Shown piece after piece: positions 37,623 through 42,675 of a stretch of DNA of 49,916 bases. Each line of letters begins with the position of its first letter. Position 1 is the stretch's first letter. This DNA comes from Ministeria vibrans ATCC 50519 (taxonomy: Eukaryota; Protista; Filasterea), in contig CALSCP010001080.1 of assembly GCA_943704425.1 (NCBI GenBank), positions 1 to 49,916 on the forward strand. Direction: 5' to 3'. Position numbers and translations under genes: made by a program. Under the pieces are notes generated by a model. It worked only from the letters and a program-made list of their open reading frames with translations, made no database searches and was not told the origin of the DNA.

Positions 37623-40600
37623 CTATGGCGTCGGTGGGTGTGTAGGAGCCGATGCGGGAGCGCTGACAACGCCATTGCCGTCGCGGTACAGCAGAATGTC
37701 GCCTTCGTTGAGTGGCTCGTCCCAGCCTGGCCAGATGCGACCTGCTAGGAGTGCCTGCTTCATGTTGGCGGGAGCTATCGCCTGCAGTCGTCGTCGCAGG
37801 TCGCGCACAGAGATGACAGTCTCGCCAGGCGCAAACCCTTCGTGTGTCGGTCCCAGTGCGCGCACCAGAAGCTCCGTCAGCTGGCTCTGCGATTTGTCAT
37901 CGGTCAGGTATCCATTGGCATGTGGTACAGAGCTGGTCAGGATCTGGCGGGCATAGCCTGGCATCGGTGCGGCCAGATCTGCGCCAATGTCGTCTTTGAC
38001 GAGCGCACCCGAGTTGCAGAAGTCTGCAATCACGAGCACATTGCAGCCCGGCCACGAAACCTGACCACTCAAGAGCGCACCAAGCGAATCCAGGTTGAAG
38101 CACGACCGGCGGCCATCGGGCGTCTCAATCGCATCGCTCAGCACCAGGCCACCGCCTCCGCCGCTCACTCCATGGCCAATCAGATGCACAATCAGCAGTG
38201 AAGATCGACCAGTGTGCTTTCCCGCCTCCTTCGACAGCTCCAGAGCCGCCTTCTCAATGCGCGTTCGTGTCACTGCCTCCCACTTACCAGTGGCATCCAC
38301 ATCAGAAACAGACCGCACACTAAACTTGCGCTGTCGCCACAGCTCAGACACCAGCTTGACGCTGTTGGCGACACCGGGAAGGTCCTTGTACTTGCGAAGC
38401 GGTGATTCATTGGTGCTGCGGTACTTGCTCACTCCGACAACCAGTGCAGCGGCATGGGTGTAGCCTGGTGGAAGCGCCACATCTACAAAACGAGAAAACA
38501 ATCATTTGGACAAAGTAAGAAAGAACATACAATTCTTACGTCTTTGGGGCTGTGTCGCCACCCACCACTGCTCCAGTCGCTCGTTGCACACGCGTGCCTT
38601 CCCCACATGTGCCACCAATTCTGCACCTACAACGTCTGCTCGTCGATGTGCTTCACTCGCCTGTGCCACATCCGCTGGTGAGAAGAGGGGCGCATTCGTC
38701 TTGAAGGGATGGGCGGGCACAAGGACGGGTGTGCCTCGCCAGCCCCAACGCAGCGAGCGAGTGCCGTTGCACACGGCGACACAGATGCGCTCCAGAGTAC
38801 GCTGCACTCGAACGGCGTCACTGTCGTCTGTCAACTCAATGCGCACATNNNNNNNNNNNNNNCGCCAGCCCCAACGCAGCGAGCGAGTGCCGTTGCACAC
38901 GGCGACACAGATGCGCTCCAGAGTACGCTGCACTCGAACGGCGTCACTGTCGTCTGTCAACTCAATGCGCACAAACGACTCGTTTGCGTTGAGTCGCAGG
39001 CGCAGGGGAATGCACCTCTCCATTGTCATGGCATTCGTGCACCGCTGAGTCGCGCGGATGGGAATGTTGAGGAGCGATTCGCGCCACAGCGCCACCATGA
39101 GAAGGTGAAAGGTGGCAAGGGAGACGGGCAGCAACTCGGCATGAATGAATTGATAGAGGAACACTTGAGCGGGATGGGAAACAGGCGCATCGAGGAAGGG
39201 CGCATGGGCGGGAAGGAGCATGGGCACAACGAGTTGCTTGCCGCGACGCAGAGCGAGACTGAGTCGCTCGAGGCAGAGCATAAACGCAGGGACGTCAGTG
39301 ACGTCGGCGCCGGCGAGGAGTGGAATGAGCTCGGGTTCGGGAGGAGGAGGAGGAGGAGTGATGATGGGATCCTCAGGTTCAGGTTCGGGCTCGGGCTCGC
39401 GGGTGCTGTTGGACCATTGTAGAAGTCGTTGCAGAAGACTTCGACGACGTTCTGAGGGTTGCGGTGGGACGGGTGAATCAGTCGTACACAATTTCGCTGT
39501 GACTGACTCGGGCTTGCGTTCCGTGTCAATCTCGCTTGGTGCCGGAAACAACTCCCCGGCACGACGGGAAGCAGCGGTCCAAACCAACCACTCTGCAACC
39601 TCAGCAGGAAACCCACACTCCGATTCGCACTGCGCTGCTGTCAACTCAGCAAGGAGTCGACTAGTGGACGCGGGATCACACGCATTTCCCGCCGCTTCGA
39701 CCTCACGCAACATCGCCAGCGCACGCTTGCTCTTTGCCCGTCCCCACTGCGCCATCACCACCGAACACAGCAGCTCCAGTGCCCCAATCAGACGTGGCAC
39801 GTCAAACACAATCGTGTCGGTGTCGCAGACCCGCTGACTCGTCGCATCTGCACGACACACCAGAATGTCTGCAGCACTCTCAAGATAGGGCACGAGACCG
39901 TCGCGAATCGCGTCCGCAGTCGGCATCATTCCACCGAGTGTGACATGAGGAGTGTCGTTGAGCTCGAGTGAGTCAAGCGCGTCCACACTGGACATGAGTT
40001 GCACGTTGCCCAGTCGCGCCCATCGCCCAATCAGATCCTGTGTTGCCACCATCTCCAACGGGAGTGTGCGGTCACGCACAGCCTTGTGCATCGCTGTGCT
40101 CACCGCCGACAGTCCGAGACGGGCCCTGCTGCCCACTTGGAAAAAGGACAAACCGGGCGTGTCAGGCGGCATCATGAGATGACTGCCCAGCGCCGGTCCG
40201 ACCAGACGGAGAATCTCACGGGAGACAAGAAGGAGAAGGTCGGCGGGGACGGTGTTGCGGGGGAACGTGTCAATGTGTGTGCCCACGATGATGACGCGGA
40301 AGTATGACTTGTCAGTGATGGGCACCTGGTGGGCGATGATGTGCGCCCACTTTGTGAGGTGCTCGTACTGGCGTTGGGCAAGAAGCGCGGTATTCATGAC
40401 GGACAGGTCAAAGACAAGAACGTACACCGACTCGGAACCCATGAAGAGAGCCGGAAGAGAGTCGTACATCGACTCGCCTACAAAGTTATTTGCCAATGGG
40501 AAATCGTCAGTCGATCGCATCATGTATCATGTATGGTGTACCGGCAAAGTCAAATGTGTCCATGTCAACATGCTCTTCGTGGATCTCATTCGCCAGCAGT

Positions 40601-42675
40601 CCTCGCACAAATGCCATTGTGGTGGACATGGCAGTCGAAGGTGGCGCCGACGCAGAGATGGTTGGCGGTGGCGGGTGATGAGGGTCGGTCGTGGTCGTTG
40701 TGCCAGATGTAGGTAGGCGTGGGGCAGCAGCGGAGTCACTTGCTGTGTGCACAGGCAAGGAGGGTGCTGCTGATAGTCCAGCGGGACCTTCGTCCTCGTT
40801 GCTCTCCTCATCAACTGCCAGAAGTTCCGTCGTCATCCGATCCTTCCCTTCTACATCCTCCTCTTCGTCGTCGTCGTGTCCAGCAAGAAGACTCGCCAGG
40901 CGCAACTCGTCCAGTGGAACAGTCTCAAACACACCCGCTCCCGCATTGTAGACCATTCGCAGTTTGTGCATGCGAGTGGCAATGGAGCGGTCTTCCTCGT
41001 CCGGCAACTCTTCTCCACGCAGTGCAGCCACCAGAGCCGTCTTGCCTGCCTCGGTCGCACCCAAGAACAGCACTTTGATCGACCGACACTTTACTGAGCC
41101 ACGTTTCATCGCAGCGGAGAATGCAAGGTCGTACGAAAGAGCACTGCAAAAGAGAACCGAGTGAATCCAAGAAGAAACGAAACCGTTGTGAATATTCGTA
41201 CGCCACCAGTTCTGAGATGGACCATTCCGTGCGAGTGCCGTCTCTAGCGTGGGCAACAAGATGCTCACCGGAGAGCTCAATCTTGACGGGACTATACACG
41301 TTTCAAATAATGAGTAACAAGTCAGAGGTGCAAGTGGGAAGGTAAGTGTACCAGTCAGTCGTTGGAAGTGTCTTGACTTTGGTTCCTTTTGCAGTGCTCC
41401 ACACTTTGATTGTGCCATCCGATGAGCAACTGAATATGGTCTTTCCATCACGAGACACACACACTCGATAGACCTGACTGAAACACAATCCACTCAGTTA
41501 ATTCAACACGTTTCGACATTCACTTACTGCTCATGACCCGCAAAAGTGCGCACATTCTTTCCCGTTTGCACATTCCACACTTTCACTGTTTTGTCGTGCG
41601 AGCAACTGATCACAAGTGACTCATCAGGTGAGAACACTGATGAGTAGACACCACTAAACCAAACCCGTACAGTCAGTTCCATTCTCACGCTGCGCATTCT
41701 CTTACTCTGAATGACCAGTCAGTGTTTTCGTGCACTCTCCACTTTCAGTTGACCACAGTTTGATAGTGTTGTCCCACGAAGCACTGAGAATCGTCTTTCC
41801 ATCAAGTGAAAATCGCACAGACGCAATTTCCCTACAAAACACGATTCCATTTCCAATTCCATTCCCATTCACTCTCTTTCTCTTACCCTTTGTGTCCCTC
41901 AAATGTCTTTTCGCACACTTTCCTCTCAATGTCCCACAATTTCACAGTACTGTCCTGTGAGCCACTCAGTGCTTTCTTTCCATCCGGTGAGAATTGGACA
42001 TCCCACACCCAACTACACCAAAAGAGAATTCAATTCAAACTCAGTCGCAATATCAATCGTACTTTTTGTGTCCCTCAAACGTGAATTCACAGTGTTCTCG
42101 TTCAATGTCCCACAGTTTCACTGTGTTGTCCCATGAGCCACTCAGTGCCTTGTTGCCATTGGGAGAGAACACTCCACTGAACACAAAACTACACAAAGAA
42201 TGATAAACACAAACACAATTGCAATTTGCATTTCTCTTACTCTGAGTGACCTCTGAGTGTCTTATTGCATGCTCCACTCCCAACGTCCCACACCTTAAGC
42301 GTCATGTCTACAGACGCACTGAGAAGACGCGTTCCATCAGGAGAGAAGTTGACACTTTCAATATAACTACGAATGGACAGTTTGAGTTGTGATTGTGATC
42401 GGATTGACTTACTCTGTGTGTCCACTCAGACTCCGCACAAACGAGTAGTCTCTAGCATCCCACACAGTGATGTCATGGCTCCCTCCTGCACAGGCCAGCC
42501 ACTGTTCGTTAGGGCTCAGTGTAAGACCAAAGATCTGATTGGTTCTTCCATTCCAAGAGAATAACGGGAAATCAAACGAGTCTGACCCACTGCTGCTGCG
42601 GTCAAACAGGCCAACCCCACTTGTTCCCGCCTCCGCGTACGCCCATAGCGACTCGTTGATCTTCACAGATCTCAT
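37623..42675 (-). CDS. WD40-Roc-COR-like-caspase-like (peptidase C14) multidomain protein
   Basis: Exons 42675-42413, six 126-nt exons (42366-42241, 42188-42063, 42012-41887, 41831-41706, 41653-41528, 41477-41352), 41291-41202, 41143-40542, 40477-38531, 38482-37623, all joining in frame. Roc motifs [12 protein letters not shown]|[19 protein letters not shown]; C14 motifs [22 protein letters not shown]. Confidence 0.85.

Follow-up and report, generated by a model that had tools for sequence, protein, structure and literature searches.

In this work, we analyzed a 49,916-nucleotide (nt) stretch of the filasterean Ministeria vibrans ATCC 50519 (contig CALSCP010001080.1 of assembly GCA_943704425.1, positions 1 to 49,916; hereafter the window) and found on its minus strand a gene that encodes, from the N to the C terminus, a WD40 propeller, a Roc-COR switch, and a caspase-like protease (Table 1). 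We consider it probable that this is a real and intact gene for a single-chain tripartite receptor, and that it is one member of a large and fast-diversifying family. The original prediction for this region, made from the sequence without database searches, had proposed a sensor, a switch, and an effector built on a Roc-COR core; this interpretation is largely supported and is less unprecedented than had been held.

Table 1. Predicted exons and features of the WD40-Roc-COR-caspase gene, in positions of the window.
Feature	Position	Strand	Description
Whole coding region	37623..42675	minus	11 exons and 10 GT-AG introns; all exons open in frame
Exon 1	42675-42413	minus	
Exon 2	42366-42241	minus	
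Exon 3	42188-42063	minus	
Exon 4	42012-41887	minus	
Exon 5	41831-41706	minus	
Exon 6	41653-41528	minus	
Exon 7	41477-41352	minus	
Exon 8	41291-41202	minus	
Exon 9	41143-40542	minus	
Exon 10	40477-38540	minus	
Exon 11	38482-37623	minus	
WD40 propeller (exons 1-8)	41202..42675	minus	Pfam WD40; seven repeats and a degenerate eighth
Roc, N-terminal half (exon 9)	40542..41143	minus	P-loop GATEAGKT at 41061-41038; low-complexity insert of ~110 amino acids; DFA(G) at 40551-40542
Roc, C-terminal half	40146..40477	minus	G3 continues as G/ESMYD; G4 VGTHID, with T-H-I-D at 40280-40269
COR-like region	38737..40125	minus	COR-A part, variable Pro/Glu-rich insert at ~39525-39345, COR-B part; boundaries approximate
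Assembly gap with flanking repeat	38737..38972	minus	14 N at 38849-38862; ~110 nt on either side
COR-protease linker	38540..38736	minus	~65 amino acids; COR-to-caspase spacing conserved in 29/31 loci
Last intron (most likely position)	38483..38539	minus	phase 1, 57 nt; donor GTAAGA at 38539 conserved across paralogs
Caspase-like protease (exon 11)	37623..38482	minus	Peptidase_C14 (Pfam, 37.2 bits) and conserved C-terminal extension; stop at 37625-37623

Frame analysis of the window places the start codon (ATG) at 42675 and the stop codon at the end of exon 11. All 10 introns have GT-AG borders and lengths of 46-64 nt, the exons contain no in-frame stop, and their summed length is divisible by three. 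After subtraction of an assembly duplication, the coding sequence has a length of ~4383 nt, which corresponds to ~1460 amino acids (aa). Two of the introns had been proposed before. The intron at 40541-40478, which interrupts the Gly codon of the G3 motif (DFAG, followed by E), was placed correctly: it is in frame and is found at the same site in paralogs. The intron proposed at 38530-38483 is also in frame, but its donor is better placed 9 nt upstream. The donor GTAAGA at 38539 is kept in five paralogs and the alternative GTATGT (38530) is not, so the last intron is most likely 38539-38483, three codons off the earlier model. Furthermore, a continuous frame needs the intron at 41201-41144, which was absent from the earlier model, plus seven introns within the WD40 part. 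All database searches and structure predictions were done exon by exon, or on unaltered open reading frames (ORFs) of paralogs, and never on a spliced full-length chain.

Exon 10 contains an assembly gap. The ~110 nt at 38972-38863 recur at 38846-38737, and the reading frame is retained across the gap because the period of this duplication is 126 nt (42 codons). The segment occurs only once in each of four paralogs (C1443, which is 96% identical, C1441, C985, and C1025), where the two gap flanks align to coordinates that overlap. The gap at 38849-38862 is a contig overlap that was left unmerged, and it does not affect the reading frame.

Several lines of strong but indirect evidence place the protease exon in the same gene as the upstream exons. 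It has no Met upstream of its catalytic His and Cys. In 31 loci of the genome, the COR end is followed by the caspase exon in the same orientation, at a median distance of 260 nt (237-292 nt in 29 of the 31), and both the phase-1 intron between COR and caspase and the intron in G3 keep their positions across paralogs. On a 5.5-kb metagenome scaffold, a relative has WD40 cassettes, Roc-COR (61% identity), and caspase in unchanged order. A Logan contig from another sample also contains this COR end, then a GT-AG intron of 52 nt and the start of the caspase, with 45% protein identity. The claim that the ORF fragments form one protein is thus sustained by the in-frame exons, the lack of a Met before the catalytic dyad, and the conserved spacing and intron positions. 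A further argument, that intronless paralogs prove the fusion, was rejected, as the long ORFs of C985, C2822, C437, C1025, and C1441 read through short in-frame introns at the positions seen in the window. Several short introns of the family (38483-38539 and 40478-40541 in the window, and their counterparts in paralogs) have lengths that are multiples of three and are stop-free in some paralogs; as a result, ORF finders join such exons, and a retained intron would add residues in frame rather than truncate the protein.

For the N-terminal part, seven WD40 repeats and a degenerate eighth had been claimed. Exons 1-7 all match Pfam WD40 (23 bits for exon 1 and 32-39 bits for each of exons 2-7), and the eighth unit (exon 8) was assigned by sequence alone. 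Exons 2-7 are phase-2 cassettes of 126 nt that encode one repeat apiece. In the 88%-identical paralog C985, equivalents of exons 1, 8, and 9 are present and cassettes 2-7 are missing; their site is occupied by ~1.5 kb of sequence in which several frames, on both strands, are open and which has neither a Pfam match nor a tandem repeat.

The G1, G3, and G4 motifs of a Ras-like Roc GTPase (GKT, DFAG, and VGTHID) are present downstream of the propeller. When a profile derived from 39 family sequences was compared with PDB, the best seven matches were LRRK2 Roc (E 3e-4 to 3e-3), in alignments that pair GKT, DFAG, a VYDLS-like strand, and VGTH[LI]D. In the AlphaFold2 (AF2) model of a 1044-aa paralog ORF, the COR part has a predicted local distance difference test (pLDDT) score of 85-96. 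Foldseek aligned this model to LRRK1, C. tepidum RocCOR (3dpu and 6hlu), and LRRK2 over 490-607 columns (E 2e-8 to 1e-4), with caspases next, over ~270 columns. Protein-language features of window exon 10 point in the same direction, as COR-A, Roc, or COR-B is found in each of the ten Atlas clusters closest to it (0.94-0.96). The predicted Roc GTPase is backed by the motifs, the profile matches to LRRK2 Roc, and the paralog fold, and the COR-like region predicted after it by the paralog fold and the Atlas features rather than by a sequence profile. The window gene encodes a ROCO protein by motifs and fold, though it stays under the Pfam thresholds. A phmmer search of the Roc-COR exon against 1.84 billion representatives gave only four matches, all of them fragments from relatives, and when the 1044-aa paralog ORF was used in a word-based search, no full-length homologue came up in the public protein sets covered.

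The last exon encodes a caspase-like protease. Its match to Peptidase_C14 (PF00656) is well above the gathering cut-off of 21.4 bits and the catalytic dyad is intact, with the His at 38174-38172 (IGHG) and the Cys at 38018-38016 (DFCNSG), as had been predicted. Across 31 aligned copies, the His never varies and at least 90% retain the Cys. We take IGHG and DFCNSG to be closer to metacaspase/orthocaspase motifs than to those of animal caspases, which presumably suggests a preference for a basic residue at P1. The AF2 model of window exon 11 has a pLDDT of 85.4 and a predicted template modeling score (pTM) of 0.88, and Foldseek aligned it to MALT1, caspase-9, bacterial GSU0716, and yeast Yca1 (E 1e-8 to 1e-7). 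The closest Atlas clusters are all bacterial C14. The best NCBIfam model is caspase_w_EACC1 (NF047832; E 2e-11), which at 43.6 bits versus a cut-off of 140 indicates resemblance only, and PADLOC likewise gave only a weak caspase match.

Relatives of this protease are scarce in public data. A word-based search with the caspase exon returned 11 metagenomic fragments and nothing else, no relative was found when bacterial and archaeal genomes were scanned with the caspase alignment, and the metagenome scan gave one weak and uninformative bacterial match. In PDB, phmmer with the caspase exon produced matches to designed repeats only, which were judged spurious. The Pfam Gasdermin profile had no match in the genome, a negative that is uninformative because the control gave none anywhere either. 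After the caspase core, a C-terminal extension (37626-37790, the last ~50 residues of exon 11) with the pattern GRIW.DW....N.GDILLYR.G.GV is found in nearly all paralogs and was modeled as short beta strands.

The gene is one of many. In the 29.7-Mb assembly, ~38 caspase exons are near full length and others are fragments, and Roc-COR exons are about as numerous; the majority are paired and many have WD40 cassettes upstream. We put the family at about 40 or more copies in this assembly. Among the internal stops flagged in this genome scan, at least one (C173) is a natural stop where a match ends. The family is not uniform in its architecture. C2371 (~24900-29800) is a variant in which Roc-COR is followed by seven TPR_12 repeats and then, farther downstream on that strand, by another COR-B-like piece and a caspase exon. 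Three Roc-COR paralogs (C437:37307-41923, C491, and C986), one of which is 72% identical to the window gene, have no detected caspase exon on the contig and may carry a different effector or none. In C2822 (47001-49431, plus strand), an 810-aa open frame with NB-ARC (Pfam, 35 bits) precedes a Roc-COR-caspase paralog by ~100 nt in the same orientation and may be either an adjacent STAND receptor gene or a portion of one larger gene.

Selection on WD40 differs from that on Roc-COR and caspase. We compared two independent pairs of close paralogs by omega, the ratio of nonsynonymous to synonymous substitution rates, with a Fisher test of WD40 versus pooled Roc-COR and caspase. Between the window gene and C1443, omega is 0.94 for WD40, 0.18 for Roc-COR, and 0.30 for caspase (p 1e-4); between C1344 and C916, the values are 1.08, 0.29, and 0.23, respectively (p 0.004). 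Roc-COR and caspase are under purifying selection (omega ~0.2-0.3), and the WD40 part has an omega of ~1. The synonymous divergence (dS) between the window gene and C1443 is uneven, with ~0.03-0.05 in WD40 and the N-terminal part of Roc (40542-42675), and ~0.11 in COR and ~0.06 in caspase (37623-40477), a pattern that hints at past gene conversion between paralogs or at a mosaic history.

The replacements in the WD40 part are concentrated at a few sites. Positions 1, 3, and 19 of the 41-residue cassette account for 13 of 25 replacements between the window gene and C1443 (binomial p ~4e-9) and for 15 of 27 between C1344 and C916 (p ~7e-11), with position 21 next. These three positions were picked after inspection of the first pair, and the second pair is the cleaner test. 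The hotspots form two pairs (1/3 and 19/21) that are 18 residues apart, and each pair flanks a conserved residue. In the HET-E/HNWD repeats of Podospora, codons 7, 9, 25, and 27 are positively selected and lie on the interaction face (PMC1805685); the spacing of cassette positions 1, 3, 19, and 21 is identical. By our own mapping from motif positions, the cassette hotspots would correspond to the R1-2, R1, and D-1 hotspots that WD40 proteins have on their top face (PMC3419727).

The architecture, the intact motifs, the purifying selection on switch and protease, the hypervariable propeller positions, and the expansion of the family were computed here. From these, we infer a scheme for ligand binding, GTP control, the mode of protease activation, its substrates, and the outcome. 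The N-terminal propeller, with top-face positions that vary among paralogs, would be the recognition surface; Roc-COR, with LRRK2-type motifs in a divergent sequence, would be a nucleotide-dependent switch; and the C-terminal protease, which is bacterial- or orthocaspase-like, would be the output. A ligand on the propeller, either non-self or altered self, may alter the nucleotide or oligomeric state of Roc-COR. Such a change could free the protease domains or draw them together, possibly via COR dimerization, and defense or cell death might follow once the protease has cut downstream substrates or its own receptor. The sensor-switch-effector logic of the original prediction is supported by the ~40 or more copies, the domain-specific omega values, and the HET-E-like hotspots in WD40. 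In its fullest form, the reading is that of a ROCO-based, rather than STAND-based, repertoire of intracellular non-self receptors, each a single-chain "apoptosome" with its own caspase-like executioner, in which NLR logic has arisen convergently with HET-E-like diversifying positions and shuffle-ready repeat exons. We offer this tentatively, as a possibility that falls just short of being probable.

Several observations weigh against the tripartite receptor. All splice junctions are predictions from genomic sequence. Of the Pfam domains expected for the gene, WD40 and Peptidase_C14 were called, but neither Roc (PF08477) nor COR had a match on the window exons, and the paralogs are below the Roc and COR thresholds. 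In paralog ORFs that read through the in-frame intron, Roc is the best Pfam match with 19-26.3 bits versus a cut-off of 27, and it matches in two halves that flank the insert, with profile positions 1-41 in the N-terminal half. Pfam Roc misses the window exons because the domain is divided by an intron and by the ~110-aa insert between the P-loop region and G3. In the paralog AF2 model, fold confidence is low for the N-terminal half of Roc and for the insert. Across the genome, the Pfam COR-A profile misses the whole WD40-Roc-COR-caspase family; the six canonical ROCO genes that it finds (C837, C2679, C1569, C1613, C1711, and C945) include no member, so the family is a divergent ROCO clade. 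The WD40 omega of ~1 could be partly relaxed constraint. Also, simple activation by COR dimerization is uncertain because a bacterial Roco is reported, in the available text of a preprint, to monomerize upon GTP binding (bioRxiv 10.1101/2023.11.13.566844). If the gene model, which is predicted from genomic sequence, or the gap within exon 10 had misled us, the locus might hold a WD40-ROCO gene next to a separate caspase gene, or a dead copy, and the Pfam misses of Roc/COR would fit such an artifact. We regard this as very improbable, given a caspase exon that has no Met before the dyad, a COR-caspase spacing and phase-1 intron conserved in 29-31 loci and in environmental relatives, a gap that is an in-frame overlap artifact, and an omega of 0.18-0.30 for Roc-COR and caspase relative to the closest paralog.

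Other explanations accept the protein and differ in what it does. The same protein could serve allorecognition or kin recognition, as does fungal HET-E, with death upon contact or fusion with non-kin instead of pathogen sensing; the hypervariable positions shared with HET-E/HNWD repeats (PMC1805685) and the large family are both compatible with this. We find it unlikely, although the present data fit it as well as the main reading: cell fusion has no known record in this organism, and bacterial proteins of like architecture are interpreted as anti-invader systems (PMC8195603). The protein could also be a regulatory ROCO signaling protein, in which the protease carries out ordinary limited proteolysis in development, stress, or trafficking and no non-self is recognized. 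Many ROCO proteins do signal, such as LRRK1/2 and the Dictyostelium Rocos, and brown-algal ROCO genes respond to several stresses according to the available text of PMC11378527. Such a role seems more improbable still, since ~40 or more paralogs and top-face replacements at an omega of ~1 are unexpected for a housekeeping regulator.

NLR-type immunity in animals, plants, and fungi is thought to be based on STAND ATPases. ROCO proteins are a suspected parallel receptor class in bacteria and brown algae, and we know of no clear eukaryotic example with an attached executioner. If the non-self receptor reading is true, the family would represent an independent and convergent invention of NLR logic in eukaryotes, which would matter greatly to ROCO biology and to the question of how innate immunity evolved. 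Each of its ~40 or more genes unites a diversifying propeller, an LRRK2-type switch, and a caspase-like protease in a single chain, which makes the family a directly testable system. It could show how a Roc-COR switch controls an enzyme and how caspase-like proteases are regulated outside animals, and it may inform the still-debated activation mechanism of LRRK2. Furthermore, the diversification of a receptor repertoire is accessible here through one exon per repeat and hotspots that match those of HET-E.

The architecture had been thought undescribed, which does not hold in general. Bacterial LRR-Roc-COR-caspase proteins are catalogued (PMC8195603) and a Roc-COR-CHAT protein is known from Runella, and our literature search found no description of a eukaryotic Roc-COR-caspase. 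The bacterial proteins have leucine-rich repeats (LRR), an AP-GTPase (Roc), COR, and a C-terminal caspase, TIR, trypsin, or other effector (Kaur, Iyer, Burroughs and Aravind, 2021; PMC8195603). They resemble the window gene in that repeat sensor, Roc-COR switch, and C-terminal effector share one chain and in that a genome holds multiple paralogs; moreover, the window caspase is nearest to bacterial C14 models. Unlike them, the window gene is eukaryotic and intron-rich and has WD40 instead of LRR as its sensor; the bacterial proteins carry one effector per paralog, whereas nearly all copies of the window family that we examined carry the same effector. The gasdermin-activating protease of Runella zeae, described as "Roc-COR-CHAT" (bioRxiv 10.1101/2021.06.07.447441), similarly has Roc-COR fused to a clan-CD caspase-like protease, and its proteolytic activation of a cell-death effector has been shown experimentally. 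The Runella protease is CHAT (PF12770) and is in an operon with gasdermin, whereas the window protease is C14.

Among eukaryotes, LRRK2, LRRK1, and DAPK1 share the Roc motifs GKT, DFAG, and VGTH[LI]D and the Roc-COR fold with the window gene. Their output is a kinase, the WD40 domain of LRRK2 is C-terminal, and the window family has a long insert inside Roc. The brown-algal LRR-ROC-COR genes (Teng et al., 2024; PMC11378527) are also an expanded eukaryotic ROCO family of proposed immune receptors, in which every repeat unit has its own exon and the repeats diversify. They have LRR instead of WD40, and no protease effector is reported for them; the word "caspase" occurs 0 times in that paper.

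Fungal HET-E/HET-D/HNWD proteins (Paoletti et al., 2007; PMC1805685) resemble the window family in the WD40 specificity domain, the spacing of hypervariable positions, and the multigene family; the likened cell-death output is a presumed one in the window family. HET-E has a NACHT (STAND) NTPase, an N-terminal HET effector, and C-terminal WD40 repeats, whereas the window gene has a Ras-like GTPase and N-terminal WD40 repeats with one exon per repeat. The Apaf-1 apoptosome with caspase-9 likewise follows a logic of WD40 sensor, nucleotide switch, and activated caspase; Apaf-1 has NB-ARC and recruits a separate caspase via CARD, whereas the window gene has a Roc-COR switch and a fused protease. 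No window exon has a Pfam match to NB-ARC, NACHT, or CARD. As expected of NLR-like receptors, the gene has a repeat sensor in which surface positions are hypervariable, and it belongs to a multigene family. Because NB-ARC and NACHT are absent and the NTPase is Ras-like, the window gene is not a strict NLR; it is an analogue of the NLR/STAND receptors rather than a member.

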